Source: Lytechinus pictus
Lineage: Eukaryota
Reading direction: 5' to 3'
Assembly (NCBI RefSeq): GCF_037042905.1
Contig: NC_087260.1
Location: forward strand, 25,544,001-25,608,000
Length of the DNA stretch: 64,000 nt
A model generated the notes under the pieces. The model made no database searches. It was not told where the DNA came from and saw only the letters and a list, made by a program, of their open reading frames with translations. Each line of letters begins with the position of its first letter. The stretch's first letter is position 1. A program made the position numbers and the translations under genes. Below are positions 2,012 to 51,279 of this stretch, in pieces.

Positions 2012-2539
2012 TAACCCAGAGAGCTCCCGCCCGCGCAGCGGGCGGGAGCCCAGAAGCTCACAGTGTATTCTACCATTGCCACCGGACAAGGGTGATTTAT
2101 GGTCTAAATATTTCTCCAAATGAATTGTGAAAACAAAAAGTGTACAATTACCACGATTATATGGATGAAGGTCTAGCGAGTGGCAGATTCCTGACATCTG
2201 AGCACAGTCTGGAACCTCAAAAAAACCAAAAGTTCTCTCCTTCTACCCAGTCTCGATCGGCCGTTTTGTTACGATTTTTAACAAAAATGGCCGATCGAGA
2301 CGGGGTAGAAGCAGAGAACTTTTCGTTGTTTTGAGGTTCCAGACTGTGCTCAGATGTCAGGAATCTGCCACTCGCTAGACCTTCATCCATATAATCGTGG
2401 TAATTGTACACTTTTTGTTTTCACAATTCATTTGGAGAAATATTTAGACCATAAATCACCCTTGTCCGGTGGCAATGGTAGAATACACTGTGAGCTTCTG
2501 GGCTCCCGCCCGCTGCGCGGACGGGAGCTCTCTGGGTTA
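2012..2539. mobile_element. 528-bp near-perfect palindromic non-autonomous DNA transposon, TA..TA termini, 9-bp TSD (AcademH- or MULE-like)
   Basis: The two arms of ~260 bp are almost exact reverse complements (centre ~2275). Perfect TSD GTGTATACC at 2003-2011 and 2540-2548. Confidence 0.92.
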
Positions 2540-3923
2540 GTGTATACCGGTAATGTTTGGTAGTGGAATAAAAAAACAAATGAAATATCACAATATAATC
2601 TTTGCCTCAACAAGTGGAGACATAAAAATGGAAGTTAGTGTGAAAAAGTATGAAAAAATGAGGTATACAAGTAATACAGTTGTCTCTCACTCTTTCTATG
2701 AAAAAAAATTCTATAATAGCACATTATGCTTCCTCTGAGGGCAAAATCAAGTAATAAAACTATAGTGCTAAATTGATTAAAAATAGCATTCATTTACTGC
2801 ATTTTATTAAATAATCTTTTATATATTTCTGAATCGTTAAAGCTTTCATGACTAGGATGGAAATACTCATGTAAAATCAAAATGAAAACTTAGATATAGC
2901 ATTTTCCATTAAACTGTCATGTTTTTAAATATTATTATTGATCATATTTCATATTTGTCCTACAAACTGAATTATCCAAAGGCCTAAGGGTTCTTGTTAT
3001 ATTAAGTATTATATCCCATATTCTCAGAACAAAAGCTATAATTACTCCAGTATTCCTAAAGGCCCCAAACCAATATCAATAAAAAAGAAGAAAAAATAAT
3101 AAAATGCAACTAAAGATCCGACTTTGACACACTTATTTATTCTTTTCTTTCTTCTTTGTTTTACTCAATCGTACTTGGAAGGATAAAGTTATACAATTTT
3201 ATCAAATCATTGTTCTTAAAAGAGCCTTAATTGGCATCCACTCCGAAGTCATATCACTCACTTAACATGGGTAAATTAAAACTATAGCAAATTACTTAGT
3301 TTTTCAAGAAATTGAAAGATATTTGATCTAAATTCATGTGCATTTTACCAGCTTTTGTTTGGAGCTGCATAATTTTGAAAAAACAGCAACAACATTTTGA
3401 GCAGTATTTACAATCATACAAATTTACATTTCTTTTCAAATTGCGGTACTACTATATGTTTAAAAATAAATGGATGGAATTTTTTTTCCTGTATGAGTGT
3501 GATATATTTTATAGTGTATAAAAAAATACCTGTAATATTCATCTCTAAATTTAATGTAAGGTGAGGGGAGGGGGGGGGGGTAAAATGCTATTTTAAGGGC
3601 AAGATATATTTGCATTACAAAAGAGGTTACTACATTCATTTATCATAATTATTAGTAATTAGTAGTCAGTCAAATAAATGCCACCATTCCATATGAAAAT
3701 TATGTATTAGAACCACTACAATCCTAAATATAAAATGTGTTAATCTGTGCAATAATGGATTAATAAGTAAATCAATTTTGCTGCGAACAGAGTTGTTTGA
3801 TGCATTGACATTAGAGTTTTAAAGGGGTGTAAAATTGTGATGATTAATTTGGTGCGAGTGATGACAATCAAAACATAATATCACATTCCAGTTTGTGTGA
3901 TAGACATTTATTTCTTACCTTGC

Positions 3924-4367
3924 CAGGGTGCTACATAACATTTTAGAAGCGCTTGCCCGGTAGGGCAAGTAAAGTTTTAAATGGTTGGAATATACTTGCC
4001 CAAAAATCTATTTCACTTGCCCGAACAAATCCTTGAAAAAAAAAGTTTTACCTCTTCAAAAGAAAGTTTTGCGATTTTATAAACCACTGACCCTTTTCTC
4101 TCTTTTCACATGAACTGATCTACCTTGTTATTGCATTTCTTTTTCCAAAGTAATTTTATCTTGCCTGCCATGACCAAAATTAGGGTCAATATCATATCAT
4201 ATCGACCCTAATTTTGGTCATTCTACTGTGAGAATTTTGCTTTCTACTGAGTGAATTTTGCTTGCCCAATTCGGGCAAGTAGTTTTGGTCTTTACTTCAA
4301 AACACTTTCCCCGACTCTTACTTTTACTTGCCCCGGGCAACCAGGCAAGTGCTTATGTAGCAACCTG
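3924..4367. mobile_element. hAT-like MITE (CAGGGTGCTACATAA TIR)
   Basis: TIR 14/15 identical. Subterminal CTTGCCC/GGGCAAG repeats. Flanks ccttgc/ccttgt give a 6-bp TSD with one mismatch. An internal 17-bp inverted repeat lies at 4171-4220. Confidence 0.8.
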
Positions 4368-4421
4368 CCTTGTTTATATGCTTTATCACAAAGGGAAAAG
4401 AAAGTTTTGTTGCTATCCCAA

Positions 4422-4481
4422 AATTCAAAATATCCATAGTAATTTCAATTCAAAATATCCATAGTAATTTCAATTGAAAAT
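4422..4481. repeat. 25-bp tandem repeat (aattcaaaatatccatagtaatttc), ~2.4 copies
   Basis: Seen directly. Confidence 0.85.
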
Positions 4482-6462
4482 AGTCAACTTGGGTATAGCT
4501 TCCTTTTGCAATACAGAATGAATTCATCAATTAAAAAAGGAATAAATTGAACTAGAAAATTGGGAAATAAAGCATATTTTTGGCATTTTAAGCATAAGAA
4601 AGCAACACTTGAGAGTAAAAAATAAATAAAAGAAAAAAGAAGATGGAATCAAAATAAGAAAACAATTTCTACTTTACCATCCATCTGATCATTTAATTTT
4701 TTTTACAAACTGCAATTGAGCTAAGTTTACTGAAGGCTCATAAAGCTTTGACACTGCGAAAATAGTATAAAGGACTTACAGGTTGCCAGAAAATAACTAA
4801 TACAAATACCTTCCCCCCTTCCCCCACGTCAGAGAAGACAGAACATATATCTCCAAATGAAGTAAACAGTGACGAAAAATTTTATCAATGTATTTTTCTG
4901 ATTGATATCAAAGCATCTTGAGTTCATGTTCAATCTTAAATAAAATCAGTTCTCCTCTCAATCCAGTTTTCATAATGTACGATACATATTAAAAAAATGC
5001 TGAATTAGGCACTTAGAGGGGTTTTTTTTTCACTTAAGGTAGAGATCACATATGGAAGCAAAAAAAAAAGAAGAAAAAAAAGAACTTGATTGAAATAATT
5101 TCATCCAAAGAATGGCTGATCTAACAGATTTCAAGTAAAGTTCATATAAATACAGGTAAGTTCCAAAGTGTTTAAATTTTTTACTTTATTTTTTTGGGAG
5201 AAATCATTTTAGTGAGAGTTATATTTCATGCCTAAATGAAAGCTCCAACATAATTTTTACTTTAAGGCTCACCAGAAAGGTGGGATTGAAATTAGTACAG
5301 AAAATTTCCTGAGCTAGAAAAGAAAAAGTAGATCGGTCATCAAGTTTATCTTTATCTCAAAACAAAAATGTAATTCAATGAGATCAAGACAAGAAATAAA
5401 TCACAAAGATTGAAGAATTAACATAAAACCTATAATTTGAGCATTATTTCATAGACAAATCTTCTCAAACACAATCATTAAATTAAGTTCTATTAAAAAT
5501 TTAAACTTAAATTCAAGTACACAATATCTAAATTTTGATTGGTGGAATATGGAGAGGAAAAGAAAAAGAGGGGTTGGTAGCGGGGGCAGCTTCAGAAACT
5601 TTTTATTTAGATGGTAAAAGTTCCAGGCTTTTGAACATAAGTTATTCCTGAGTTTATGATAAAGGAAGAAGGGTTTTCAAGTAAATTCCTAGTTAATTTC
5701 ATGATTTTTGGGGTTCTTATTTACAACATGGTTTTGGGCAAGAGGCATGGGTGGGGGCAGAAAGCAGGGTGGGGCACGGTACTTTATTGAATAGAATTCA
5801 TCAAAGCTGAATATTAGTGAAGCAGGTACGCACTATGTAGTACAGACAATCATTTTTTTCTTCAAAGTATCCTTGTCTTAGGTGGGATTAACGTTGCAAT
5901 GGTTTCTCCGTGGGTTGAGGAAATAGTACCTTGTTCATACAAAGACTGGATTCTCACAACGATCATCCAATGCAAGATTTCTGATGTAGTACTGGGTATC
6001 GACCCCGCGATAGCTTGTTTGATTATGTACAGGTGTGAACACAGCCATGGATAGGAATACCCCCCAACACAAAAATAACACGAGATGACCACCCATGGCT
6101 GTTCTGTTCATACTATTTGCCAAACTAATTGTGAATGTATATAACAATTATCCAATATGTTTTTCAGTATTACCTTTCATGCGCTTGAATAGTTTACATG
6201 CTTATATATGCAAGCTATGAAATAAAATAATGAATTTATCAAATGCACTGCTAAATTTTGGCGCAAAACATACATGATCATTAACAACTTTTACGTATAT
6301 ATTTGTTAAAAAATGGGCATCAGCAAAAGAAAAGATCTTTGACTGCCCCTTTTAATAGAAAATTACTAAAATCTCTATTGTATCATTGTATTTAATGCTA
6401 ATAAATGTATTGTTATATGGAAGTGCTGCATTATATTGATGCTTATACACTTTACGTATGCT

Positions 6463-6468
6463 TTTATT
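6463..6468 (-). promoter_or_regulatory. First candidate polyadenylation signal (AATAAA) downstream of the terminal exon stop
   Basis: TTTATT on + strand ~170 nt past the stop. Several more follow (e.g. ~5783, ~5602, ~5185), so the true 3' end is undetermined. Confidence 0.25.
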
Positions 6469-6640
6469 GTTCATATGTTAATATTTAGGCAGTTTACAAT
6501 GTCATTATCCATAGTGCGACATATTCTCTCTTTTGTTTAAAAATCAAACTTCATGAATGATGAATTGAAATAATGTAAATAGTGTTTTGATTATTCAGAG
6601 TGGTGACTGATTTTCAAAGTGTGAGAATAATGTGTGTTTT

Positions 6641-9308
6641 TTAGTCAAAATCATCTGAATTGCAAGTGCTCGCTGCCAGGGAGAAATCGTTATTCTCCAA
6701 GTCAGCAAACAAGTCGTGTCCATTCCCAGACAGTATTCCCCCGCTACTGCTGAAAATATCAAAGTGAGCAGCGGCACTCCCAGCATCCGGACCTAGCACT
6801 TGGTCTCCTCCCTCGCTACTGGAGCTACCAGATTCACCCAGACTGCTCTTAGAATGAGTTTTGGTGTAGCAGGCTTCAGAGACCTTATACTGATACACAC
6901 AACTATCATTGGAGCTAGAAGTAGTGCCTTCATCACTCCCAACCTCACTATCACTCTCATCACTCAGATGATCAGCCAAACCACACCCCAAGTTCAAATA
7001 CGCACCATTACTACCACTATCATCACAGTGCACACGCAAGCTCTCGTTTTCTAGGTTTCCAAAACTCAGCTCACTACAACTGACAAGGTCATCGGGGTTG
7101 CGCACCGTACCAAAGTGTCTGCGCATGGAGTCGTCACTCCCGGGGCTGCTTGACTTGGCAGCACTCCCGGCGCTTCCGGGCTGGATTAACAGTTCACCTG
7201 GTCGAGGAATCTGAACCTTTAACTTACTGACATACATGGATTGACCCGACCCTTTCTGATGCCAGTTTGTTCCCTGAAAACCATTCCCTGCAATATTTGG
7301 TAGATCCCCAAGGATATCATCACCCCCTCCCTCTATCTCATCCTGGATTACTGTGCGGATAGGTGCTGCCTCGGTCTGGGCTTCTAGTTTGGCAACCATT
7401 TCCTTAGACAATTCTGGAAGTTTAGGAAGACTACTTTCTGGTAGAATACCAGGACTAACATAATGGTGAGGTGGTGACTGAAGGGGAGCAGCAGAATTAC
7501 CAGAGACATCATCCACTAGAGCATTATCCCTTTGAAATATTTCATCGTAATCCCTCAAGTAATCTATTTTAAGATCTAATGGGGTTGGACTTGAAGTTTC
7601 CCTAGATTCCTTGAGCGATTCCAGCACGCCGGGAATCATTGATGTCTCATTGGTATCTGTTGAAAAAGAAACATGTTTTGTGCCCACTTCGATTTCTGTA
7701 AGTCCCTTAGAGATTACCCCTTTGACTTCTTCATCTGGGTCAGTTCCAGAGCTTGTTTCTGTAAAAGCATCGACTCCTTCCGCCTGAAGGGTATCTCGAG
7801 TCTCTGCTAAGGATTCTTCTAACTGTACAAGGGTATGGGAAGTTTCATCAAGGTCGTCTTCTAATGCCTGGAGAGTAGCGTTCGTTTCTCCAAGAGTTTG
7901 ACCAAGGTTCTCATCACTCTCAAAGAACAGTTTTCTTTCTTGTCTAAAGGCCCTATAATCACTATGAAGGTTACCTTCTACGTTTCCCGTATTCGCAATT
8001 GGCGCTGCATCAGAATGGACTTGTGAGAAAGAGTCAAGGCTTGGTGAATCGTAACTACTGAAAGTGAAAGCATCATCCACAGAAGGGCTTGTTAGATTAC
8101 TTGCAACAGGTTTTACTTCAGTGGCGGGATATTCAACTTTAATTTCAGTATCGGTACGCCCTCTTTGATCAAAGTCATCACTGCTGCTGCTGCTACTACT
8201 ACTACTTGAGCTACTGCTACTCAAACTAGAACTTCCCCTTCTGCGAAGCCCATCTTTATGTAGCATATCGCCAATTTCAGAAACAAAGAGGGACTCGTTA
8301 ATCTGCAAAGGGGATAAATTACGACCATCATCATCATGATCAATATCACTAACACTATCAGGGGAGCCGAGACTTTTAAATATGTCAGAATTAGGTTCAG
8401 TATCCGAAATGACCTCTGGCAAACTAAATAACCCACCTTCTAAGTCAGTGAAAGTGCCGGGAGTGCTCATCTCACTAAGCAGGCCGAGAGTAGCCTCACT
8501 ATGAATCTGAGTCTCCACTTCCGAGGGGCTGACTGTACCCATTTCACTTAGCATTTCTGAAACTGATCCCAGGTCAAAATCCTGGTTTTCTGTTTCCCCG
8601 TCCTCCCCTTCCTTGTCTCCCTCCGTCTCAATGTCTAGATTTGACGAGACGAGGGAGGAGTCACTATCAGAGTCCTCGGAAGTGAACTTGCCCCCAATGA
8701 GGAGAGGACGCAAGATGTCCGCAATGGGACGGACCGCTTGCGTCCCCTCCTCTTCCTCTTTCACCTCCTCCTCCCCATGCTCATCAACAACACTTAAACT
8801 GGAAGAACTAGAAGAAAGCATACTCTGATTGCCTCCCATGTTGATGTCTCCATTCCTCTTGGGCTCTGCATCCGAGAGGGCATCCAGTCTGGTCTCTCCC
8901 GAAGACACCAACGGCTCCGGCTCCATCCTGGCATTGAAGGAACCTGAAGAACTGGCCAGCCTGCTCGCCTGGCTTGGATCCACTTCAGCCTGGTTCTGTT
9001 GCTGTGAGTTGTCATCATTCACTGTGTACTCGTACATGATACTTGAGTTGGACTGGCCTTTGTGGATGGCAATCCTTGAGTTCTCATGGACTGGCGTGAT
9101 GGGAGTCGACGACGGAGGCGACGTCGGTGACTCAGAGACAGGACTCTTAGGCATGTCGGGTTTGGCATAGGTGGGGTCATCTGGGAAGGCCAGGTTAGGT
9201 GCACTGTGATGATCAGTGACTATTGTCTCTGTCATGTCGATGGTGAGAGGGGTGGTGGTCCTTGGAGCACCAAGGCTTCTTGTTGACATCCTTGAAGCAT
9301 TTAATGTC
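6641..9308 (-). CDS. FARP1: Giant terminal coding exon (~890 aa, acidic/Ser-rich, probably disordered, with a short coiled coil)
   Basis: Acceptor atttacag at 9309. Phase 2 puts it in frame with the 882-aa track ORF 6641..9289. It begins [12 protein letters not shown], which resembles the end of the FA domain, and ends at a TAA. Confidence 0.8.
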
Positions 9309-12300
9309 CTGTAAATTCAAGATGGATACAGATACCAATAATACCATAGCTGAATTTCATGAGCATACCATAAAATAATTAACCTTTTAGTATGTTTGAT
9401 ATGTCACTTCATTTCTTTCTCATTCTTACTTCATGTAAGAACTGCTCTAGCCATGATAATTTGAGAACATTATACCTTCCATATAAAGAAGAAAACATAG
9501 ACAAATCATTTAGGAAACTCCCACAAAGGGGGTTGGACATACCTGTTCATGGAATTGCTCAACATCAAAACTGAAAATTCGATAACAGCCTACCATAATT
9601 TTTCTTTTTACAGATCTTATTCAATAAATCCAGAAAAAGAACATGGACTGTAAATTGTTTTTTCCTCTTCATATTATATCTAGAAAATTCAAATTAAGAT
9701 AATTCCTTGGATTAACGATAAATCAGTCTTTTTCAAAACTTACACTAATGATCTTGAGTTTCCTCCGACCCTGGCCTGCTCAACTACTTGCTTCTGTGTC
9801 CTTCCACTGAAAAAGAAAGAAAAGAATTGATGATGTGAACAGAACTATTTCCACAACAAATTGAATAACACAAGCCAGTGCTTTTGCAATCCTTCTGATC
9901 ACAAAATCCAAAATGCATTTCTTTAAGCAAATTAATCAAGATTATTTCATAACATAACACTTTGTTAAATTTCAATTTGGGAACTATAGAACTTTCTAAA
10001 TAACAAACCTCATTCTGCTTTCAGATTATCAAATCTTTAGAATATTGAGCCTTATTTCCTCTTTGGAGTAGCAGACCTACGGCTTAACAAACCTTTGGAA
10101 TAATGAGCCTTTGGAGTACTTAAATGTTGGGAATAACAACCTGATTACCAATTTTGTGAGAATGATAGACAGACTAAATATACGGCGGTGCTCAACAGTT
10201 TGTGAACCCCACCAGAAAAATGAACATATTTAAAGTGTTCAAGTTTTGCCATGTTTTAGATTAGATAAAAGTTTATTTCTCAGGGCTCGCCAAACATTGA
10301 AGTGTTGTTGTCTACATTCATCACTCATTATGAAGGAGTGCATTTGTGAAGGGGTTCACTAACTTTTGAGCACAACTGTATATATATATATACATATATA
10401 TATATATAAACAAAAGAAGACTTAATAGAAACGCTGTGAGGAGACATAATCTTCCAAATTTTAGGTCATAGACCTTCTTCAGGGATGATTTTATTATCCA
10501 AAACAGGTTGCATCATTTGGTGATGATACCAACGCGCAATAAATACAATGCGCAACATAACGCGACAGGTGCATTGTTAGAAGATATTGTGACGTAATGA
10601 GTAAAGTCCAGGCAAATTTGGAAGATTATGTCTCCTAACGGCGTTTCTATTAAGTCTTCTTTTTTTTCTACATTATGACGCAGACGCAAAACTCTTTGAT
10701 TTATATATATACATACCTGTATCTGAATGTTGATCCTCTACTCAAGAGCCGCCTCCTTGATCTAGGATACTTGATCTGTGTTAGACGGAAGAAGGCATGA
10801 TGTTCTACACAGCTCTTCCAGAACTGTTTACAGTCATTCCTCGTTTCCATCTGGAACTCTACGGTGCTCCTAGGGTAACCCTGTGAAGCAGGAGAGAAGA
10901 AATAGCAAATGGCGTAAGCATGTATTCAATGATATTTGCATATTTTTGTTAGATGAGATATAAATCTCTTGTTTAAGCATGGAATGGGAAGACATTTTGG
11001 GATATTATCCTATCGATATGAATAGCTTTGTTTATTTCCAATCACTAAATTTCTAAGGAAGGAGCTAGAAGGTCCCTTTTTTTTTTAAAGAAAATAAAAC
11101 ATTAAAGAGAGAGGGTGCTAGTATAAAAACAAATTCAAATTTTCAAAAAGAACATACAGTAGAAAAATAATAAAATCAAAGGCCCCAGATACATATCTAT
11201 GATTGGAATGTGAGATTTTACTTATGTATTTTTCGAATTATTGACCCTTTACCAAACCTTAAGCTTGGCTTTAAATCATGGTGCATATCATTTTCACATT
11301 TCTTGCTATTCATTGCTTTTTGCCCCCCCCCCCCCTCCCCCAATCCCACTTTTTCTCTCTCCTCTCTTTTCCCCTATCTCTACCCTCTCCATCCATCAAT
11401 TCAATGATTGATATGATCATTATTAGATACCAATACATAGCTAGGACTGGTCATCTCTCACTCTCCCTCCCCCTTCTTCCCTCTCCTTTTCTTCCTCTCT
11501 CCCTCTGTCCGTCCATCCACCCACCCACCCATCCATCCATCCAACTAATGATTGACATGATTATCATTAGAAACCAGTACATAGCTAGACAGGTAATTTC
11601 TCCCTCCCCCCTCTCTCTCTACTGTCCGTCTGTTTGTCCAACCACCCATCCATCCAATGATTGATATGATAATCATTAGAGACCAATACATGGCTCCAGC
11701 TGGTCATCTCTCTCCCTTCCTCTCTCTTTCTTCCTCTCCTCCTATCATCCATCCATTCATCCATTCATTCAACGATTGACATGATTATCATAAGGAACCA
11801 GTACATAGCTAGACTGGTCATCTCTCTCCCTTCCTCTCTCTTTCTTCCTCTCCTCCTTCATCCATCGATTCATCCATTCATTCAACGATTGACATGATTA
11901 TCATAAGGAACCAGTACATAGCTAGACTGGTCATCTCTCTCCCTTCCTCTCTCTTTCTTCCTCTCCACCTGTCATCCATCCTTTCATCCATCCATCAGTC
12001 CATCCATTCAACGATTGACATGATTATCATAAGGAACCAATACATAGCTAGACTGGTTATCAATCTCTTTCATCGATAAAGGTCATATGATGATAACACA
12101 ACATGAATTGCATTACCCTCATCATAAACCCTTCATAAACTAAATACTAGTACTTTATCATTCCATCTAGAGTAGGGGTGTGTTCATGTGAATCAATTAA
12201 GCTCGAATCACAAAAATAAATCACAAAAAACATGATCACAAAACATAGTCAATGTGAGAGATTATTAAAAAAAATATCTTGTTCTGATTTTTTTAATTTT

Positions 12301-15300: not shown

Positions 15301-18300
15301 GTGGCCAGAGGGGACGTATTGAACAACATCCTATGGGACTTCACTATTCCATCATTTCATTCATTCTTATAACTGATTGCACACAGTGATCAATGCTATC
15401 AATCACAAAACCTGCCCAATGATCGATTGCTAAGTGTTGTGCTACAGGGCCAATATGCATTCTTAAAGGTCAAGTCCACCCCAGAATATTGTTGATTTGA
15501 ATTAATAGAGAAAAATGTGAGAAGCATAATTCTAAAAATTTCATCAAAATCGGATGTAGAATAAGAAAGTTATGGCATTTTAAAGTTTCCCTTATTTTTT
15601 TACAAAACAGTGATATGCACAACTCAGTGACATGCAGATGAGTCAGTCGATGATGTCCAGCACTATTTATTTTGTTTTTTATTGTTTGAATTATACAATA
15701 TTTCATTTTTTTTACAGATTTGACAATAAGGACCAACTTGACTGAACCATACAATGTAAAAAAAAAAAGAAGCTAATTCCACATGTTCAGGGAGGAATTA
15801 ATCGTTGTTTCACTTGACAGTGAGTGGAAAATTCGAATATTTCATATTTCATAAATAAAATACAAAAGAAATAGTGAGTAGATGACGTCATCAGTCTCCT
15901 CATTTGCATATCGACCAGGATGTGCATATAACTGTTTAGTGAAATTAAGCGAAACTTTAAAATGTCATAACTTTCTCATTTTACATCTGATTTTAATGAA
16001 ATTTTCAGTGTTATGCTTGTTGATTTTTTTCTCTTTTTATTCAAATCAACTATTTGTTGGGGTGGACTTGTCCTTTAAAAGAAACTACTTACAAATCCTT
16101 CGGGATGTAGCTTGATGAGGAACCTTTTCCTCTTGAAGCTGAGCTTGCGGATCTTAGCCCAGGAGAATGTGTTGATCTTTGTGTTGTTCTGGAAGACCAA
16201 GGTACCTTGATGGGATACAGCCAGATAGAGCTGGACGTTCTCATAGTCCTTGGCAGGATGAAGACGCACCCCGTACATCTCTAGTCTTCTTGCAACGTCC
16301 AGGAGATTGAAGTCTGCATCAGCCATTGTTTGACCGCTGGAGTGGGGATCAATTTTATTTCACATTGCATGTAACATCTCGATTGGAATTACTGCACTTA
16401 TATAATCATTTGTGAATGCAATGTGTTATCTTATCTACTATTTGTATTATATCACATTATGTTGCACCGAATGATTTTGGAAAAAAATAAAATCAAGTTA
16501 AACAAAATCAAATGTGTTAATTAGAACAGATCAGATAATTAAAAATATTAATTGACAGACAGAACACATCTAATAATTTTACACAGAATTCACACACTGC
16601 CTACATTGTAACTTGGAGCCCTTGACTTAAACAAAGGTTGCTGTGAAATCAAACAATTTTTTTCTGATACTCATAAAGTTAGTATATACTCAATGTAAAC
16701 TTTCACATTTTCATTGGTACACTTTAATGAACAAAAACAATTTGAACATAAAAACTTTCTTTCTAGCATTTCCTTCTTTTGATAATATTTCATCCTCAGA
16801 AAGCTTTCGTTGGTCACGTTTCATGAAGAATTGTTAAAATTAAAAAAAATGCTTAACATCAGCCAATCAGATAGAAGGGTTTCAGTAGCTTGTAACTGTT
16901 ATTGCAATTTTTTTTTTATAATTTCAAGTTTTAAGAAATTGGACCCTGGGCTCTGAAATCACTGAAGATATAAATTTCCAATGGTTTGAGAGGATTTAAA
17001 TTAATAAATTGACCAAAAAATAATTTTAAGGGAAACAAAAAATACAAAACATTGACTTCCCATCTTTTTTCAAGAATGGAGAATCAATGTGTAACTTACA
17101 TGTGGTTTTTGTGGTACTCCTGAATCTTAAGTTCCATTGGTCTTGATTGGTTGGGCACAAAACGGAAAGCTGTGATGTAACGACCATCGTCATGTTCCAT
17201 CGGACTGTAGTCCCCAACCTCGGCTGAAAAAGGAAGAGTGTATAAACCATTTCAAAAGCTAAACCAGGGACCGTTGATTTATGCTTTATAGCAGAAGAGT
17301 GATTTTGTAAGAGATTTTCTTTAAAGACAGTGGCGGAATTAGGCTGACCTAACTTTGAATTAAAAAGGTTTTTAAAGTATGAAGTTCAAATGCAAGAGGC
17401 CACAGGGGGAGGTTTCATGAAGTGACAAAATCACATTCAGCCAATCATATGCAAGTATTTCATTAACTAGAGACATTATTCAGTGAAAGCTACTGACCAA
17501 TCTGTTCATGTTTATGTCTCATTGTACAGTGATAAAAAAATCAGTTTATTTCATTCAAGTTCATTACAGCATTACCAGCAATTTCAGTATAGGCCTATCA
17601 GTATTTAAAAAGTATGCCATTTTGGATGGCTCTTGTTTTGTTTATCTTGAGAGTTCAATCTGGCAACTCCGAGAGTTGCCAACACTAAAATGCGTGCACT
17701 TGCCAAGATCTATTCCTTTGCATTTAGGGGCTTTGAACTCAATACAGAGTGAATCTTCCACCATTTAAATTTAGATATTCTTGATATAATTATACAGTAT
17801 ACCCTCTCAATAAAATAAGATCAGAAGAAACATATTGTGAAATTTCAGTTTGTAAATAAATTGGCCATTTGATCTATAATGAGAAACAGACAGGCCCAGA
17901 AGCATACATTTCATTTAATTTTAATGACAAATATTGTGGTATTAATTCTGTAGATATGAGAAGGAAATTATTCATCATTGAATGTAAGACTACATAATAA
18001 AATATTGCATCTTAGATAAGGATGCAAAGTCCCCATTTGAGATAGTTTAGGTCTTGTGATGGCGCTGTTTAGAGGAGCTGTGGCATAAAACTCAAAACTC
18101 ACCTTGTAAGATATATGAAGCCATGAGGGCTGCTGTGTTTTCTGAGCACGGTAATCTACCATTGGCTAGATCTTTCTTCACTTGTAAGGCAAACAAGTAT
18201 CTGTGCAATCAAAGAAAATATTATCATAAATGAAAAACAACAATGATGATGATGATGATAAGGAGGATGATAATGATTGGTAATGACAATGACGATGATG

Positions 18301-21300
18301 GTGGTGGTGGCAGTGGTCGTGTTTGTGATGATGGTGATGATAGTGATGATGATGATGATGGTAATGATAATGATGGTGATGATGACGGTGATGGTGATAA
18401 TAATGATGGTGACGATGAAAGTGAAGATGATGATGGTAATGGTGATGATTATGAGGATGATAATTCATAAAGATATTAATCAGTACTTGTAGGATGCATT
18501 TTGCCATTATTAATAATTTTGACTCATATCATATCCATATTTCATATTTTCAAAGTATGAAAATCAATGGAAAATCAATGATTGTTGCCAGTTTAAGGAG
18601 CGAAACAGATTAATCTTGAACTTACATATAAGTCTATGGGTTAAAGAAGAACTGATTGATATATCACTTACTTTGTGAATTAATCATTTTGACTCATATC
18701 ATATCCATATTTCATATTTTCAAAGTATGAAAATCAATGGAAAATCAATGATTGTTGCCAGTTTAAGGAGCGAAACAGATTAATCTTGAACTTACATATA
18801 AGTCTATGGGTTAAAGAAGAACTGATTGATATATCACTTACTTTGTGAATTCTTCATGCAGCTGACCTGGATCCGATAAGTAGAATTTGACTGAAAAGTG
18901 GAATAACGTCTTCTTAGGAGCTGAAAGATATAACAATAAGATAAAACATTAATAATAAATTGAAGTGATTATCAAATGTGACAAAGAGTTGAACAGAGTT
19001 CTGAGAGTGTAACAAAATCATTTCATATTGACTGAATCTGAAGAAAGTGACTGTGATGCTCGCCAGATAACAAACCTGTTGTGACAGATAATGAAATATG
19101 ACAAGCAGCTAATGCTATGGTCACAAATACCTTTACGAACAATTTTTATACATACAAATAAATGGTATAAACTCGTTTGTAGGTGTTTGTAAAAGCATTT
19201 AATAGCTATAGAGTACAGAATACTAATGCAATATTGGAGTACCAAATGTATCAAATAAATAATACTCTAAAATATTAAAAGCAACAACTAAAAACAAAAA
19301 GTTGTTAAATCATACAAGAGCTGGCAGTTACATGTATATTACATGTCAAAGTAATGTAGGGATACTAGGGCATCATGAATGCATCGTCTATTCATGGGAT
19401 GCAGGACCTGAATTACAGCATCTTCTACTATAAATGACTGTCTGAATGAAATTGAGATATGACTCTATTAGATGTAATATCAGACAGGCAGCAAAGCATG
19501 GTAAAATAGGGCATATGGACCATGTCTCACAAAGAGTTGCAATTGATCTGATTCATTACAACTATGAAAAGCCAGCAATGCCAAAATCTAGAATGCATGT
19601 CATTTTTAAGTGTTCTACATGTGTCTTGACAACTATGCTCCTCTTTATGCTCCTCTTTGTTCACAAAGAGACATTGTGTACACTTCCTTTATGAAGTATT
19701 ATGACATCAATGGATTTCCAGAGTTAGGATCGATCAGATCAATTTGTAAGACCCTGGGGCCCGTTGCAGAAAGAGTTGCAATCAATCGCAACTTGATTTT
19801 CAACCAATCAACAGCGCGCATTTGGGACTTGCCATTGATTTTTGACTTACGTTTAAACGCAACTCTTTCTGCAACGGACCCCTATTAGAGGATGAGTCAG
19901 AGTATTCATTCTGCAGAATGCCATTCACCGTGCTTAATGAAAGCGAGATTGCATGTGGTTTGATTTGGATTATAAGAAGTCATTTCTCGCTATCGATTGC
20001 GGGATTTTGGGGCTAAATTGCACATCTTCATATTAAAATGACCCAACATCAAAACAACTAAGCAGTAATGCTCCCAGACAGACTTCATTTTATGAGAACA
20101 CATCTTTGTACATAAAAAAAGGAATATTAATGAACAAAGCCATGGGTGAATGTAAAATGTATGAATAGCACATTTATAGCTCTTTTGGCATCACTGTAAG
20201 CCTCAATTACATAAGTTTAACTAACATTACATGAGTTCAACATTACTTCAATAGCTTCAAATGTTTATTTTGTATAAAAAATATTAAAACTAATCAATGT
20301 TCACTGAAGTATTATGTCTGATTACATGTATATAATTTTGGTTCAATATCACGAACATTGCAGTGTTGTAGTATTTTATTGCCCATGTCACATATGTAGT
20401 GATATATGATCTTTAAAACAGATTTGTAATGTTCATTGTAAGGTAACTGTTCTAATTTAAAAAAAAAATGAAATTACAAGCTAAAAATTTTAATGGGTAA
20501 AATATTTACAAATCAGAAGATTTTTCAGGAATAACGTTTTTTTCTGACAAATTATTACCAGAACAAACTTGTGTTATTCGAGCAGGGGGGAAAGAGGTGT
20601 TAATAAAGTCATCTCTCAAGATTTGAAATTATCCAAGATCTTGGTTTGTCTCTTGATGACCTTTAAACCAGGCAAGTTATGCATAATCATGTACCTATTC
20701 TAATTATAGCCTCCTTCCAAGCACCCACAGACAAAACAAATCCATTCCTGAAATTGGAGAGGTGAAAACTTTTGCCCGGTAACCACGATAAATAGACGGT
20801 TTGCTGGGTAACAATCTCGTCCCTTTCGGCCTGGATGTCGTTGATTAGGTTTAAGTGATGGCTAAACCCAGATCCTCTGTATATCCCTAGTCACTGCCGA
20901 TTTCCTGTTTTCTGATATAGGGCTGTATTGAAAACAAGCTAGGGAGTGTGTGCATACAAACATGGAAAGCTATATGTGGGACTCTGTGGATGTCATACAG
21001 GAAAAAAAATGATAATACGAGACTGTCTGTATGCAGCAACCTAAAGATATTTATCCCTCACATCTAAAGTATCTCTAAAAACCACCACCCAAAAAAAGGC
21101 ATGCACCCTTCTAAAATTTGGCAATGGTGATTAACGTTTCAATGATTTATTTTTTCTGAAGGCTATTGTTTTCAATTTATATGTCATTTATTCATATATT
21201 TTACAAATGTTATGTAGGTTACTTTTAAATGTCTTGTAAAATCACAACCCAAATTTCCTCATGGACATTTATTGATGCAAAAAGATTTGATGATCAAGCA

Positions 21301-25706: not shown

Positions 25707-25739
<33 letters not shown>

Positions 25740-25819
25740 CATTATTATCACCACCACCACCTTCACCATCAATACCATAATCACTATCATTATCATCGTG
25801 TTTATCATTACATCATCAT

Positions 25820-25855
<36 letters not shown>

Positions 25856-31800: not shown

Positions 31801-34800
31801 TAAAATGAGATGTAAAGAGAGATCATTGTAAAGCAATTCCACATTGTTCGTATATCAACTATTATCCAAACTAATCATGGATTCAAAGCTCACAATATGC
31901 CGATCTAATAATACCCCTTTCATTAATTTGTGAGTGCTGAGTACACATGTACGCAAACATTTTTCACGAAATTAATAATGACGGATCTTACCTCCCAATT
32001 CCAATTTCCAATGCAATTAGTTTCAGAAATAGAGCACCTAATTACAATTTCTGGAGTAAGTAATATTTCTGAATATAGAAACAAGGACAATTGTAGATAC
32101 CAGAGAAACCTTCATCCCTCAAGGTTAAAGAAAATTATTATGTTGATCTCTTATCGATCGCATGGCCATATTTGATTATAACCCCAACAATATGATTAAT
32201 AACAATGTTGTGACCTCAGCAAAGAAATAGTGGGGAAAGTTTTGCAATCCAGTGTGTTCATGCTGTATAATCTGATCAAAGTTAAACTATGATCATTTAA
32301 AAGAAGTGAACATAACATGCTTAATCATGGCACATGACAGAAATCTAGAAGTATCAGGGCCAAACTAGTGTTCAGAAACATAATAATGTCCTGATAGATT
32401 TAATCATTTCATAATGATTCAGGTAAAAAAAATAAATTTTAGTGCTACTTTTTAAGATGAAATACATAACTTACCAGATGATCTCCCTTTGTGTAATATT
32501 CCAAACCAAAGTAATCCATCTCATAAAGGTTGAGACATCGACAACATTCAAGAAAAACATCTACACCTGTTGCATTTTGCTGAAATGAGAGAGAGAGAAA
32601 AATTGTTATTACAATCATGGTGTAATCATACAGGAAAAAATGAATGTCATATTAAAGTGATAAATAATTTCTAACACTAACCAAAACATACTTATCAAGA
32701 ATAGTATTCTAACTATTCTTTATCCTGAATTATTAAATAATTATGTATCCTGAACATGTGTGTCATACATACAAACCAAAACATATTGTATATTAAGAAT
32801 ATTGTATTGTTATCCAATTTCAAACTTACATGTAGGCTTTAAGTATTATATAGTATATAGGCTATACAGTAATTCAATATTATAAGAAATTATACAAATA
32901 TCTTTGAAGAAGGAAAATTTAGGATTCATATTCATCAATTACTAAATCATGATGACAAAAACAATACCAGAATGGTAATGAGCTTTAAAACAAGAGTTTG
33001 GGGATCAGTGCCACGCCCCTTCTCAGTTCTACCAAATCCCCATTCCTAGTCATTTTGGGTCAAGAGGCAAAACGGACCAGATTCAGGGATGAGAACACAC
33101 CTAGCCATGACAACATTGACCTGGAAATGACCTTAGCACCAATATACCCTGGGGTGTGTGGTTAATAAAAATGAGGATAAACAATATGTTTCCTTAAAAG
33201 CCACTGCAATCTTCTCCACCATTATTTATCACCCAGCTTCAATATATTGACATGATAGGGGCTGTATCATATTGTCTGACTTTTCATTGTCATGTTTATA
33301 ATTGGAATGAAACCGAAATATTGGAATAAAATGAGTCCATGCAAGGGCAAATCTCTAGGCATTCTTGTCAATAGAACCAGTATCAGACCTAATTTCAATC
33401 TACTTTCTTCAAATGGTTTCCCTTAAATCGGTTAAGGAAACCGGGTTAGGAAATCAGTTTACAAGATCTCTTCCTGCAGCATTCTCATCATGATCTTCTG
33501 AACTAAAATATAAGGAGCACTTCATCAACATTGATTTTTTTTTCCAACAAGTTGTCTGATCTGACAACTTTCCATGAGTTTGATTGGCTGAGAAGCACTG
33601 TTACTATGGTAACTGTCAGATAAAACAAACTTCGTCAGATAAAACGTCTGACATGTCCTTTCATGAAATGTTTGAAAAGTGATTTTGCTCTAAGTGGGGT
33701 CATTATATCTTTATTTTTTTTAATTATTGTCTTTTTGTTGTAATACTGCTTCAAGTTCACATCAGGTATACATCTGAAGACTAGGCACTCTTGGCCCTCG
33801 TAACTGGGGCAGAATGGGGTGATTAGGGTGTAGGACTGGAAGCCTATTGGAAAAGAAAGAAGGGATCGAGCAGCCAATTTGGAAACGATCTAGAACTTGA
33901 TGATGGTATCTGGCATGAAGTGAGCAGGACTTGCACTCTTCATAAGCACAGATTAGGTTACAACAGACTGACAGGTATCGGGATGTAGCACCGTATTGCT
34001 CGCTCGGCTGAAAGTCATACATGTATGAATGGATATGATAAGTTATAAAGCTTATTGACAAGTTATAAGCTTATTTGTCTACACATTTTTTTAATTGATA
34101 AGAGGCACTGGCAAAAGAATGAATGCTGCTTTCTATTGGGATTTTATTCATAAGGACATGTTATCAATTCCTACATGTAGGCCTATATTCCAAATAAAAA
34201 CATCTCACAGCTTCATGTGATAAGATAACATAAATAATAGCAGTGACAGAACATGCATTGTGGGCCTTGTGGTCAAATAAATACTTTATTTAAATTTAAT
34301 ACATATAGCTCAAATATAATTGAAAGAGTGAATGTTGCTAGGAATCTTGTTTCACATACATGTAGCATGATAACTGCCTTTTTTTTTTTTGGGGGGGGGT
34401 TGCAGAGTCATCAATTTACACAACAAATTACTGGTTTATAGGACCTTTGGTATAAAAAAAGGCTGATTTTAAACCAAATGCGAAACAACATTATATGGAG
34501 GATTTTTAAGTAACCTTCAAATTTATGAAGAATCTTTCATATTTTGAAATTACTTAAAGTGATAATTCTTTAATCTCAAAATTACACACACAAAATTCTC
34601 TCAATATTATCTTCTTACACGAGAGGTAATATTTGATTTGGGGTTGGAAAATAAGAAAATACTGAGTACTACTTACTACTTTGCTTTCATTTTATAAACT
34701 TTTCATTTTATTTGCTTTCATTTTATAGACTTTTCATTCAGAGAAAAGCACTTTGCAATGCATTACTTTATGACATGGTTAAAATAAATGGTTAAGAATG

Positions 34801-49800: not shown

Positions 49801-51279
49801 TTGATGTACCAGTTAACATCTCTAGGCCCTTTCAAAGGACATGGATATTATCATCTTAGCTTTAGTCTGGCAAGCCTTTTACAAGTACACAAGCATTTTA
49901 AGGAATAAACACCTAATAGGTACCAATTTACCTCACCTGGGTTGAGTGGATCACAATCTGGTTCAATTTCTTGCTGAAGGAAACTACACCATGGCTAGGA
50001 TTCAAACCCACGGCTCTTTGTATCAAAGTCCAGAGACTAGTCCACTGAGCCACAATGCTCCACGTCTTGGAAACATGTCCTCAGGGCCCTATTACATAGA
50101 GCTTTAGCAATCGCTCATTGAGCTGATTTCTACAAATTATTGCATAATTGTTCTGTATCACCAATAAATCAGCCCCATGATCAATTGCTGAGCTTGATGT
50201 TACAGGGCCCAAAATAATACGTTATGAACACATCGATACATTGTAGCTTCCTTCTTTCATTATCATGTGTATGGCACAACACTAACATGAGATTCATCTA
50301 TGACATATTTTGCCAGTGTTTTCACGGACAAATATGCTCCGACCCAATCAAAGAAAGTAGCCATAGAGACAGGTGACCCTTTTAGTCAGGTTCTGTCAGA
50401 AATATTCCTTTCAAATGGGACACAGGTTTCCTGGCCCCTAAAGACAGGTTTGCACTATTATAATAGACAGGTGGCCACCTATACAAGCTCATTACATCTT
50501 CCAACATTAAGCCGATATCCACCATCAAAATGGATAGTGGGAATGCAATGTCAGGGTGCATGATGAGTTGATGACCCCTGGATTGCTTCCTGGAACCAGG
50601 TTGTCCCTAGTCTGCTATGCAGACTCTGAATGGCTCGTGAAGTGGGATCTGCAGCTGGTTTGCGAACCAGCCTGAAAGGGCGAGCGAAGCCAGCCATTTC
50701 AGATCTGCAGGCTCTAGTAGACCTAGTCTGCTATGCAGACTCCTTGAATCAGCTGTGATACACACACTGCAGATGTGGGTCTACAATTGTAGACTGCAGG
50801 CTCTAGTAGACCTAGTCTGCTATGCAGACTCCTTGAATCAGCTGTGATACACACACTGCAGATGTGGGTCTACAATTGTAGACTAGGTTGTCCCTGTACA
50901 AAGTCTATTGGAATAACCAAAGTCAGAAGTCTCAAGGGTTTAAACTTACCACAACATCAACAGTAAGTACAGAATCATCCAGCATCTGAACCTTGAGTGA
51001 CATTGTCTTCCCCTTCTTCCTAGGGGTGGTGCCATCCCGACCCGAAGACATCCCGTCTGATCTCGCAGTGCTGTACGAATGGGTTGGTGTGGCAGCTGGG
51101 CTGTACCCGCCGTAGGAGTACGAGGTCTCTCGATCGCTGAGACCCTCGCGGCTGAGGGTGGTGTCGTTGTAACGACCGTGGTTTTCAGAGAGCTGCGAAA
51201 GGGCCATGGAGTCCTCCCGCTTCATGGGCGACACAGGGACTGGTTCTCCGCGAGATCCAGCAGCCTCATAGTCGCTCAT
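6641..51279 (-). CDS. FARP1: FARP1/FARP2/FRMD7-family FERM protein, 10 coding exons: join(50950-51279,32475-32579,30043-30085,18842-18920,18103-18200,17100-17223,16093-16336,10717-10880,9744-9806,6641-9308), 1305 aa
   Basis: All junctions are GT-AG with matching phases (0,0,1,2,1,2,0,2,2). The translation aligns with human FARP1 as I recall it: [112 protein letters not shown]. The symbol denotes the family: an invertebrate gene would probably be a co-orthologue of FARP1, FARP2 and FRMD7. Confidence 0.9.
9744..9806 (-). CDS. FARP1: FARP-like coding exon 9 ([21 protein letters not shown]), FERM-adjacent domain
   Basis: 63 nt, phase 2-2. Acceptor tctttctttttcag, donor [14 protein letters not shown] matches FARP1. 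Confidence 0.93.
10183..10378. mobile_element. Tc1/mariner-type MITE
   Basis: ~28-bp imperfect TIR (CAGTTGTGCTCAAAAGTTAGTGAACCCC-like), flanked by TA on both sides. Confidence 0.8.
10405..10705 (-). mobile_element. Penelope-like element / retrozyme fragment with a partial inverted terminal copy
   Basis: ~50-bp inverted repeat (10412-10461 vs 10614-10664) that starts at the cleavage-site palindrome of a minimal hammerhead motif at 10448-10490. Confidence 0.6.
10448..10490 (-). ncRNA. Minimal type-I hammerhead ribozyme motif, degenerate (G12>U)
   Basis: Minus strand reads AAUCAUCC CUGAAGA A GGUC UAU GACC UAAA AU UU GGAAGAUU. Stem I is 7/8 bp, the core is CUGANGA, stem II is 4 bp, and stem III is the palindromic AAAUUU. 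Confidence 0.6.
10717..10880 (-). CDS. FARP1: FARP-like coding exon 8 ([54 protein letters not shown]), end of FERM-C and start of the FA domain
   Basis: 164 nt, phase 0-2. Acceptor ctctcctgcttcacag, donor CAG|GTATGT. Confidence 0.95.
11400..12066. repeat. Minisatellite: six copies of a ~58-bp core separated by variable CT/CCAT-rich linkers
   Basis: Core tcaacgattgacatgattatcataaggaaccagtacatagctagactggtcatctctc at ~11401, 11545, 11655, 11768, 11882 and 12008. Confidence 0.9.
12175..12626. mobile_element. Degraded PIF/Harbinger-like MITE
   Basis: Imperfect TIR ggggtgtgttcat / atgaacgcaacccc. TSD unclear. Confidence 0.4.
13688..13839 (+). mobile_element. 5'-truncated LINE 3' end (CR1/L2-group ORF2 C-terminus, 3'UTR and tail)
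   Basis: 13688-13765 translates [25 protein letters not shown], fitting the WNxLPxxV...SxxxFKxxLD C-terminal motif of CR1/L2-group RTs. A short UTR and a (TCCAGA)n tail follow. Confidence 0.65.
14651..14672 (-). promoter_or_regulatory. ETS (CCGGAAGT) + YY1 (AAAATGGCGGC) promoter-like module inside the hAT element
   Basis: Adjacent consensus sites in a CpG-rich patch, oriented in the host gene's sense. Confidence 0.4.
15467..16074. mobile_element. Kolobok-like MITE (AGG(T/A)CAAGTCCACCCC TIR, TTAA TSD), copy 1
   Basis: TTAA on both sides and long imperfect TIRs. Carries TGACGTCA at 15883. Other copies at 36281 and 61963. Confidence 0.9.
16093..16336 (-). CDS. FARP1: FARP-like coding exon 7 ([22 protein letters not shown]...[11 protein letters not shown]), FERM F3 lobe
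   Basis: 244 nt, phase 2-0. Acceptor ccccactccag, donor GTAAGT. Overlaps track ORF 16075..16326. Confidence 0.96.
17100..17223 (-). CDS. FARP1: FARP-like coding exon 6 ([40 protein letters not shown])
   Basis: 124 nt, phase 1-2. Acceptor cttcctttttcag, donor GTAAGT. Contains the E.GDY and P.Q....E.KI..YH motifs. Confidence 0.93.
18103..18200 (-). CDS. FARP1: FARP-like coding exon 5 ([32 protein letters not shown]), FERM F2 lobe
   Basis: 98 nt, phase 2-1. Acceptor ttgcacag, donor AAG|GTGAGT. Confidence 0.94.
18242..18465. repeat. Imperfect (GAT/GGT)n microsatellite
   Basis: Seen directly. It accounts for the poly-His/Asp/Met ORFs in the track. Confidence 0.95.
18511..18850. repeat. 170-bp tandem duplication that includes the exon 4 donor site
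   Basis: 18511-18680 and 18681-18850 differ at only one position that I could see. Confidence 0.93.
18842..18920 (-). CDS. FARP1: FARP-like coding exon 4 ([25 protein letters not shown])
   Basis: 79 nt, phase 1-2. Acceptor tatctttcag, donor GTAAGT. Contains the VKFY..DP.QL.EE.T motif. Confidence 0.93.
19756..19882. mobile_element. PIF/Harbinger-like MITE (GGGGCCCGTTGCAGAAAGAGTTGC TIR), copy 1
   Basis: 24-bp TIR with one mismatch. Sits at the end of an older related MITE (~19510-19758). Second copy at 39098. Confidence 0.85.
21761..21975. repeat. Degenerate triple repeat (gaaaag..agcagaaactggctca...tttgcttt)
   Basis: Three similar units at ~21761, ~21849 and ~21927. Confidence 0.6.
22321..22605 (+). 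mobile_element. tRNA-derived SINE, family A, copy 1
   Basis: A box TGGTCTAGTGG, B box GGTTCGAAT, core ccttcagcaagaaattt...acccaggtgaggtaaatgggtacc (Nin/Deu-type-like), (ATT/ATC)n tail. Homologous copies at 49111 and 49780. Confidence 0.85.
23064..23197. repeat. Three copies of tatctgcaagttattccattcaaacgtgtct with A-rich spacers
   Basis: Seen directly. Confidence 0.85.
25246..25875. repeat. (CAT/CAC)n microsatellite spanning an assembly gap (N 25464-25623)
   Basis: Seen directly. Includes a ~120-bp internal duplication after the gap. Confidence 0.95.
27947..28341. mobile_element. TTAA-flanked Kolobok-like non-autonomous element
   Basis: TTAA on both sides. Imperfect TIR ag(c/a)taaat...agttg. 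CpG-richer than its flanks. Confidence 0.55.
30043..30085 (-). CDS. FARP1: FARP-like coding exon 3 ([14 protein letters not shown])
   Basis: 43 nt, phase 0-1. Acceptor ttttctcattctatag, donor CAG|GTGAGT. Matches the FERM WL...KP..KQ motif. Confidence 0.92.
30116..30370 (-). mobile_element. tRNA-derived SINE, family B, with 10-bp TSD
   Basis: Minus-strand head ggtgtgtTGGCTCAGTTGGtagagcg...GGTTCAAACCcc and a (TTTTCA)n tail. atgaaaatga is duplicated at 30106-30115 and 30371-30380. Confidence 0.88.
30633..31083. mobile_element. MITE family with TGACACCGTTCTCA..AAACTAGTTTACTGGAAAC TIRs, copy 1
   Basis: ~45-bp imperfect TIR. Homologous to 37402-37821, 40352-41055 and a fragment at ~33400-33500. 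Confidence 0.88.
31207..31590. mobile_element. PIF/Harbinger MITE (TACCCCTTTCACAAACCCA TIR, TTA TSD)
   Basis: Perfect 19-bp TIR with TTA on both sides. Internal ATTATCCGC/GCGGATAAT subrepeats. Confidence 0.92.
32475..32579 (-). CDS. FARP1: FARP-like coding exon 2 ([35 protein letters not shown]), FERM F1 lobe
   Basis: 105 nt, phase 0-0. Acceptor ctctctctcatttcag, donor GTAAGT. Contains the DYFGL FERM motif. Confidence 0.93.
36281..36688. mobile_element. Kolobok-like MITE, copy 2 (internally deleted)
   Basis: Starts TTAA-AGGTCAAGTCCACCCC, is colinear with copy 1 for ~360 bp, and ends ggcct-TTAA. Confidence 0.85.
37089..37275. mobile_element. Harbinger-like MITE (GGGGGTGTTTCACAAAGATT TIR)
   Basis: Imperfect ~45-bp inverted termini. 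Confidence 0.7.
37402..37821. mobile_element. TGACACCGTTCTCA MITE family, copy 2
   Basis: Colinear with 30633-31083. Confidence 0.88.
39098..39240. mobile_element. PIF/Harbinger-like MITE, copy 2
   Basis: Same TIRs and interior as 19756-19882. Confidence 0.87.
39490..40350. repeat. Old, diverged minisatellite (gttgaaccatatcaaacatgaaag..catc.ggcctcattcacactga.atatccttg)
   Basis: The motifs tgaacca and ggcc(c/t)cattcacact recur many times at irregular spacing. Confidence 0.65.
40352..41055. mobile_element. TGACACCGTTCTCA MITE family, head-to-head composite (reverse copy plus partial forward copy)
   Basis: 40352-~40775 is a reverse copy and ~40795-41055 a forward copy. TA flanks both ends. 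Confidence 0.85.
45812..46215. other. Assembly gap
   Basis: Run of N. Confidence 1.
49111..49408 (+). mobile_element. tRNA-derived SINE, family A, copy 2
   Basis: A box TGGCCCAGTGG, B box GGTTTGAATCC, and the same core as 22321. Confidence 0.85.
49780..50063 (-). mobile_element. tRNA-derived SINE, family A, copy 3 (inverted relative to copy 2)
   Basis: Reverse complement of the copy 2 head and core. Confidence 0.8.
50084..50210. mobile_element. Short GGGCCC-terminated MITE
   Basis: ~27-bp imperfect TIR. A related end lies at ~15420-15451. Confidence 0.55.
50608..50885. mobile_element. TAGTCTGC-terminated composite MITE with perfect 9-bp TSD and an internal 89-bp tandem duplication
   Basis: GGTTGTCCC at 50599-50607 and 50886-50894. 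tagtctgctatgcagactc occurs at 50608, 50724 and 50813. Confidence 0.9.
50950..51279 (-). CDS. FARP1: FARP-like coding exon 1 (MSDYEAAG...[22 protein letters not shown]); the exon probably extends to 51411 as 5'UTR
   Basis: ATG at 51279, with an in-frame upstream TGA at 51322-51324. Donor GTG|GTAAGT at 50950/50949. Acceptor ttttcatttcacacag ends at 51412, implying a further non-coding exon upstream that I did not find in the window. Confidence 0.85.

Follow-up and report, generated by a model that had tools for sequence, protein, structure and literature searches.

The 64,000-nucleotide stretch of the sea urchin Lytechinus pictus analyzed here (the window; contig NC_087260.1, positions 25,544,001 to 25,608,000) carries, on its minus strand, the single FARP (Cdep-type) gene of Lytechinus, which is the echinoderm orthologue of FARP1/2 and Cdep. 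Within the window this gene ends in one very long exon, and we consider it probable that this exon is a composite one: use of an internal splice donor joins its first part to the exons of the guanine nucleotide exchange factor (GEF) module, and read-through followed by polyadenylation yields a GEF-less protein made of the FERM and FA domains and a long tail. The gene as such is known; the long isoform occurs in some automatic annotations, and was found neither in the Lytechinus protein records nor in the literature searched.

The long exon of the Lytechinus FARP gene

A protein search with the exon product led to P0004, annotated as ‘FERM, ARHGEF and pleckstrin domain-containing protein 1-like isoform X1 [Lytechinus variegatus]’, a protein of 1109 residues with the order FERM-FA-RhoGEF-PH-PH that is 100% identical over the first 18% of the query. 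FERM_N, FERM_M, FERM_C, FA, RhoGEF and two PH domains thus all lie within the protein of one gene, and among the matches there was no Lytechinus protein holding the distal tail. When this full FARP1-like protein was mapped by tblastn, its residues 1-578 fell on nine exons of the window at 99-100% identity, with residues 418-578 matching 9307-8825 exactly, and residues 579-1109 could be placed nowhere in the window, 1-6640 included. This agrees with a first-pass annotation of the same DNA, made from the sequence alone, which had seen no RhoGEF or PH exon in the remaining 6.6 kb. That annotation had suggested a search for linked DH/PH exons, and these are indeed present at the L. variegatus reference locus (L007), where 15 exons at 64741-79318 encode P0004 residues 580-1109; they share the strand of the long exon (49027-51694) and lie 13-28 kb beyond the tail stop. 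A short piece of these DH-PH-region exons (residues 1040-1057) is duplicated, with matches at two nearby places in that locus (78115-78433). Of the domains that define a FARP protein, FERM and FA were found in the window itself, and the DH and two PH domains through L007 and the junction reads described below. The window and L007 are 97.5% identical over the exon including short flanks, 91% over intron 9, 94% over the first kb past the stop and 84% further downstream.

The long exon begins at the acceptor tttacag|G (9309/9308) and consists of one split-codon base (9308), 888 sense codons (9307-6644) and a TAA stop (6643-6641), which confirms the giant terminal exon that had been described after the FERM and FA exons. 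A six-frame scan gave a stop-free run of 9316..6644 on the minus strand in this frame, and the program-made list of open reading frames (ORFs) contains an ATG-to-stop ORF of 882 residues on the minus strand, 6641..9289. The frame is equally uninterrupted for 888 codons in the second Lytechinus assembly (L007), and an open frame of this length in DNA of 41% GC is not due to chance. Window and P0004 part after residue 578, where P0004 continues as ...GGNQS|SPAPSPTK... and the window as ...GGNQS|MLSSSSSS.... The sequence at this branch point, CAGA|GTATGC, is a phase-1 internal donor (8824/8823), and it is unchanged in both L007 and L001, a genomic contig from another urchin family. The features of the locus are as follows:

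50950..51279, minus strand: first coding exon, with the start Met, an N-terminal low-complexity region and the start of FERM_N (tblastn, P0004 residues 1-110, 99% identity)
32472..32597, minus strand: FERM exon, P0004 residues ~105-146 (tblastn)
16093..18939, minus strand: cluster of four FERM_M/FERM_C exons, at ~18939-18841, 18202-18098, 17230-17099 and 16335-16093 (tblastn; Pfam)
10719..10892, minus strand: exon that completes FERM_C and begins FA (tblastn; Pfam FERM_C, E=5.7e-10)
9744..9809, minus strand: small FA exon (exon 9), with its donor GT at 9743-9742 (tblastn; splice reads; a loose read end at 9809)
8824..9308, minus strand: proximal part of the long exon, common to both isoforms, 161 codons and the split codon (identity to P0004; RNA depth)
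8818..8823, minus strand: internal 5' splice site GTATGC (exon side CAGA), phase 1, which yields the GEF isoform (junction reads)
6644..8823, minus strand: distal exon extension of 727 tail codons, which would be translated only with the internal donor unused (open frame; dN/dS; homologous tails; RNA contigs)
7766..7915, minus strand: predicted conserved long tail helix, distal-tail residues 303-352 (structure prediction confidence; many invariant columns in the alignment of nine tails)
6854..6925, minus strand: conserved tail motif, columns S636-K654 (invariant across the urchin, starfish and ENA-contig tails)
6641..6658, minus strand: conserved C-terminus S(D/E)DFD and the TAA at 6643-6641 (the same in 9/9 aligned tails and in the Apostichopus protein P0129)
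5580..6640, minus strand: putative 3' untranslated region of the long form (AATAAA at 6468-6463 and 5607-5602; RNA contig ends)

Within the four-exon cluster, Pfam recognized FERM_C with E=1.2e-15 on 16078-16359, and the FERM_M match in the window exons was weak and below threshold (E=0.08). The FA region (PF08736) is precomputed for P0004 and for two further proteins discussed below (P0002 and P0011); in the window it is encoded by 10892-10719 together with 9809-9744. An Rfam search of 1-12000 returned no family at the gathering thresholds. Since it has no DH domain, the predicted long isoform could not itself have Rac/Rho exchange activity.

Transcripts on both sides of the internal donor

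RNA was taken from a contig run (X1), two stranded runs depleted of ribosomal RNA (X19 and X20) and a cDNA run (X22); the splice joints and loose read ends considered are the strongest ones, 17 weaker loose ends lying outside this set. The splice from exon 9 to the long exon (exon 10), 9744|9308, which skips 9309-9743, is supported by reads in all four runs. At the far side of the proximal part, 14 reads of X22 and one 3751-nt contig of X1 (depth 218) have a loose end at 8822. The consensus of these loose ends, reverse-complemented, encodes SPAPSPTKSI, which is the next exon of P0004, and the acceptor of that exon in L007 reads ...ttttgtag|GTTCTCCTGCCCC, matching the same consensus. The GEF isoform is the major transcript, and it leaves the long exon at 8824/8823. 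The first-pass annotation had considered that one FARP locus might make both architectures, for instance through an internal donor, and this idea is supported; the donor itself was not among the three that it had proposed (8765/8764, 7975/7974 and 7198/7197). Indeed, mapping of RNA junctions, which it had recommended, recovered the joint between exons 9 and 10 and the exits at 8824, and none of those three was among the joints and loose ends considered.

Beyond the donor, RNA continues at a much lower level. The proximal part has a depth of 218 in the contigs of X1 and 14-21 in the reads of X22, and the distal part about 8 (~4% of the proximal value) and about 1.5-2.5, respectively, which places the distal part at ~4-10% of proximal depth in these two libraries. 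Contigs of X1 past the donor cover 7680-8696, 6440-7650 and 5628-6203, and the distal reads in X19 and X20 are oriented as the gene. Intron 9 has a depth of 0 in every run. On the downstream side, depth is 0 across 4591-5378 and at most 0.7 in the adjoining bins, in a region (4400-5560) that is spanned in full by the intron of the GEF transcript. A scan for polyadenylation signals showed that the X1 contig end at 6440 lies 23 nt past an AATAAA (6468-6463), and a second AATAAA (5607-5602) lies near the final stop of coverage. Such coverage is consistent with a low-abundance mRNA that has a 3' end of its own, and inconsistent with a nascent intron.

Downstream of the long exon the sequence is silent except at 4000-4393, where RNA depth is very high on both strands (word depth 1700-2800 in X1; 10-35 in raw reads) and both loose ends and internal skips are numerous. 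This segment looks like a fragment of a repeat or mobile element that is expressed from many copies and is no part of the FARP gene. Two low-complexity tracts within introns, 25166-25820 and 18159-18528, are Asp/Asn/Gly-rich or His/Ile/Thr-rich in translation; the former flanks a run of N (25464-25623), and both are microsatellite-like and non-coding.

Conservation of the tail and competing readings

The orthologous exon was found in genomic contigs of another urchin family (L001-L006), at 85% nucleotide identity, with a similarity that collapses outside the ORF. Their product, P0001 (883 residues), is 88% identical to the window protein, and in its shared part it is closely similar to a protein of Strongylocentrotus purpuratus. 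The Logan contigs that carry P0001 were rejected as transcripts, since unspliced introns 8 and 9 are present in them, and were used solely as orthologous genomic DNA. Ratios of non-synonymous to synonymous divergence (dN/dS, omega) were calculated by the Nei-Gojobori method with L001 as comparator. Over 721 codons of the distal part, dS was 0.72 and dN 0.048 (omega 0.067), and over 153 codons of the proximal, shared part dS was 0.458 and dN 0.025 (omega 0.054). All 100-codon windows gave values of 0.009-0.13, and codons 100-300, which span the donor, gave 0.10 and 0.09. Compared with L007, the distal part shows 30 synonymous and 13 non-synonymous changes (omega 0.118). Judged by this pattern of substitution, the distal 727 codons are protein-coding and under strong purifying selection, and the conservation of the ORF in relatives, which had been named as a check, was thus borne out against another urchin family.

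The tail had been called acidic, which holds in that it is rich in Asp and Glu; it is equally rich in Ser, mostly disordered by prediction, and has one confidently predicted helix. AlphaFold2 on the tail alignment gave a mean predicted local distance difference test score (pLDDT) of 40.7, with 633 of 726 residues predicted to be disordered, and the helix at residues 303-352 is the sole segment with block-mean pLDDT values of 62-88, peaking at 83-88. Pfam detected no family at E<=0.1 on the 888-residue exon product. When the distal tail was used in a feature search of the ESM Atlas, the best score was 0.73 (fragments of growth-hormone-receptor tails, and APC), which is below a meaningful level; these matches reflect only disordered composition and were therefore set aside.

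Homologous tails are present in Diadema, three starfish, three sets of ENA contigs and the sea cucumber Apostichopus, the last found via a profile search, and the alignments indicate that the tail is kept in four echinoderm lineages. Common to these tails are the helix block NL..LE..LDETS..L..LE.SLAET, a DSC(V/I)Y.Y.V motif and the C-terminal S(D/E)DFD; of the S636-K654 motif, the sea cucumber protein P0129 has a diverged copy. The layout of the locus can be followed in the starfish Asterias rubens, where P0011 is a FERM-FA-tail protein of 1504 residues that is near-identical to the GEF form of A. amurensis (P0014) up to ...NNTEGL and divergent after it. At the A. rubens locus (L008), the tail is the continuation of an exon (46867-49872), and the DH-PH-PH exons start at 62373, 12.5 kb past the tail stop. 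Here too a short piece of the DH-PH-region exons is multiplied, P0014 residues 799-818 matching three nearby places in that locus (67993-68527). The donor of the A. rubens GEF form, TTGA|GTACGA, is in phase 1 at a position homologous to Lytechinus 8824/8823. Because A. rubens has the same layout, we conclude that the design is older than the split between starfish and sea urchins.

Starfish and Lytechinus are therefore alike in their homologous tails (27-29% identity, with the same helix, DSCVY.Y.V and S(E/D)DFD end), in the position and phase of the internal donor and in having GEF exons downstream. They differ in that the starfish tails are ~200 residues longer, with Pro-rich inserts, and that the starfish proximal part has one extra intron. 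The starfish long forms are also annotated, unlike Lytechinus, whose protein records in the search lacked the tail. In A. rubens, Acanthaster and Patiria, the NCBI models have FERM-FA and the tail in one protein, and the A. rubens annotation already holds both forms, the long one as isoform X1 of LOC117298336; those of Acanthaster and Patiria are annotated as ‘sec16-like’ isoform X2. The existing labels of the long form, ‘COPII coat assembly protein sec16-like’ or ‘uncharacterized protein’, stem from automatic annotation only, and in the literature on FRMD7/FARP evolution and Cdep isoforms we found no description of a GEF-less FARP isoform. As the tail is given inconsistently as ‘sec16-like’ or as separate ‘uncharacterized’ genes, these annotations could be curated.

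Several observations weigh against a tail that is made as part of a FERM-FA protein. RNA does cover the distal part, a point the first-pass annotation had regarded as decisive, but at low depth, and among the reads and contigs considered no molecule crosses 8824 to link the tail with either exon 9 or the proximal part. The contigs leave the low-complexity stretch 8697-8821 uncovered, and the long form is a minor species in all four libraries. In Diadema setosum and Apostichopus japonicus, NCBI also models the tail on its own, as a separate ‘uncharacterized protein’. Finally, P0002, which combines FERM-FA with the tail, is a UniParc entry whose evidence is unknown, and it removes ~9205-8640 and ~8261-8020 inside the exon; no read joints exist at either, and the second removed stretch has no GT at the matching window position.

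The same absence of a bridging read would be expected if the distal ORF were a gene within the gene, with its own start in or just upstream of the long exon, encoding a FERM-less protein of ~650-880 residues. Tail-only products from ORF callers or NCBI, namely P0001, the Diadema protein P0003 (635 residues) and the Apostichopus protein P0129 (392 residues), would suit such a gene as well. P0001 and its kin, however, derive from unspliced genomic contigs, and the NCBI starfish models fuse FERM-FA with the tail. The zero RNA depth of intron 9 leaves no start upstream of the exon and outside it. Within the exon, the Met that opens the urchin ORF (ASRMSTRSL, at 9289) is Val in starfish and in a crinoid, so that a FERM-less product would have no conserved start. 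Moreover, neither the purifying selection nor the open frame is interrupted at the donor, where the shared part passes into the tail. We regard a nested gene as improbable, and because of the non-conserved Met and this continuity across the donor we infer that translation of the tail begins at the FERM start, so that the tail is attached to FERM-FA and not made alone.

Two further readings have very little left to recommend them. The distal part could be a retained intron or pre-mRNA of the GEF transcript that has no protein product, as its low RNA depth and the nascent RNA carried by the two rRNA-depleted runs might suggest, but an omega of 0.07 at a dS of 0.72 over 721 codons is impossible for an untranslated intron, the tail has the same C-terminus across four echinoderm lineages, coverage stops at the polyadenylation signals, and neither intron 9 nor the remainder of the intron in question is covered by RNA; we give this next to no weight. 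The first-pass annotation had also offered a separate invertebrate FRMD7-like gene with FERM-FA and a tail and no GEF, which appealed because the window model closes with a stop and polyadenylation signals and has no DH/PH exon, but the FERM-FA exons are shared with the DH-PH-PH module: most transcripts splice from 8824 to DH-PH-PH, the GEF exons follow 13 kb on in the same strand of the reference assembly, and the same FERM exons serve both starfish products, so that the 8822 junction reads and the mapping of P0004 on L007 refute it, and we see hardly any room for it.

In the composite-exon mechanism that we favor, the spliceosome would in most transcripts use 8824/8823 and join the first 161 codons to ~15 downstream DH-PH-PH exons, giving the canonical Rac/Rho GEF of 1109 residues. 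In a minority of transcripts the donor would be skipped, 727 further codons would be read up to the TAA at 6643-6641, and the RNA would be polyadenylated ~200 nt past the stop and possibly also at ~1 kb. The expected product is a FERM-FA protein of ~1300 residues without the GEF module, with a mostly disordered tail that has one 50-residue helix, short motifs and an SDDFD end. The isoform ratio may reflect how well the internal donor, which looks weak, competes with the polyadenylation sites downstream. FARP proteins couple cell-surface receptors to Rac/Rho via the FERM domain, and a second conserved protein from such a gene, with the targeting part but without the exchange module, is a candidate regulator or alternative scaffold. 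Going by its domain content and the partners of FRMD7, the long form would occupy or organize FERM-binding sites without activating Rac/Rho, as a scaffold or a competitor; FRMD7, as Watkins is said to have reported in 2013, acts through partners such as CASK.

Comparison with FARP1/2, Cdep and FRMD7

FARP1 and FARP2 of vertebrates and Cdep of Drosophila are Rac/Rho exchange factors of the FERM-FA-DH-PH-PH type, and the major Lytechinus transcript encodes this form. What the Lytechinus locus would add to the canonical FARP/Cdep gene is a GEF-less product obtained by reading through a linker exon. Among the best 120 matches in a search with the FERM region, all were invertebrate FARP/Cdep proteins except one fish PTPN3, and products with FERM-FA only are listed for amphioxus, ants, crayfish, Drosophila, ticks and spiders. 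In each pair that was aligned, the long and the GEF forms part within the linker between FA and DH. Beyond echinoderms, the genomic locus was examined for an ant, the others being represented by annotated products. In Cdep of the ant Linepithema humile (L009), the linker exon is 4.2 kb long (8684-12862, ~1390 codons); the GEF form leaves it after 75 codons, and the model of isoform X6 reads it to the end. The ant and Lytechinus thus have in common a giant linker exon with an early donor, and differ in that the ant exon starts elsewhere in the linker and that the X6 model rejoins the DH exon out of frame. Directly after this exon, on the same strand and inside the range of Cdep, L009 12902-17275 encodes a further product of 1457 residues without a Pfam match, which may be more of the extended exon and tail system.

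The tails of arthropods and amphioxus have no detectable sequence similarity to the echinoderm tail. A profile of nine echinoderm tails, searched exhaustively against 1.84 billion representatives, gave six matches: P0007 (Acanthaster), P0003 (Diadema), P0129 (Apostichopus), P0127, which is near-identical to starfish tails, and P0005 and P0128, both from ENA contigs. No vertebrate protein was among these, and no homologue was detected outside echinoderms. A search with the amphioxus tail likewise returned Branchiostoma matches only. One of these, P0023 of Branchiostoma floridae (1262 residues), contains the GEF module together with 65% of what is the ‘tail’ in the GEF-less B. lanceolatum form, at 87% identity, which indicates that the amphioxus extension is partly usable as an internal linker segment too. 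These sequences are compatible both with a common origin of the GEF-less long tails across phyla and with their repeated invention.

FRMD7 is the vertebrate X-linked infantile nystagmus gene. Its 12 exons encode 714 residues, of which FERM occupies 2-282 and FA 288-336; the C-terminal region is without homology to other proteins, and the closest homologues of FRMD7 are FARP1 and FARP2. Exon 11 ends at c.1050, so that the last exon (12) encodes residues 351-714 (PMC3163398). Like FRMD7, the long Lytechinus isoform would combine FERM and FA with a long domain-less C-terminus, encoded in a large last exon soon after FA, and the absence of DH and PH from that tail is a likeness in architecture only. 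Unlike FRMD7, which is a gene of its own and has no GEF exons, the long Lytechinus form belongs to a GEF gene and does not stand alone, and in the nine-tail profile search the FRMD7 tail showed no detectable similarity to the echinoderm tail. As disordered tails diverge fast, this lack of homology does not exclude common descent. In terms of domains and gene structure, the predicted long form is a FARP isoform with FRMD7-type architecture, not FRMD7 itself. We tentatively put forward, as a possibility that we ourselves rather doubt, that a single ancestral bilaterian FARP gene already made a GEF-less FERM-FA-tail isoform, and that, of the copies left by the vertebrate genome duplications, one keeping only this isoform became FRMD7. 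If this were true, FARP1 and FARP2 would have kept the GEF form, the isoforms of one gene having been subfunctionalized into genes, and the undivided state would survive in echinoderms, amphioxus and arthropods.

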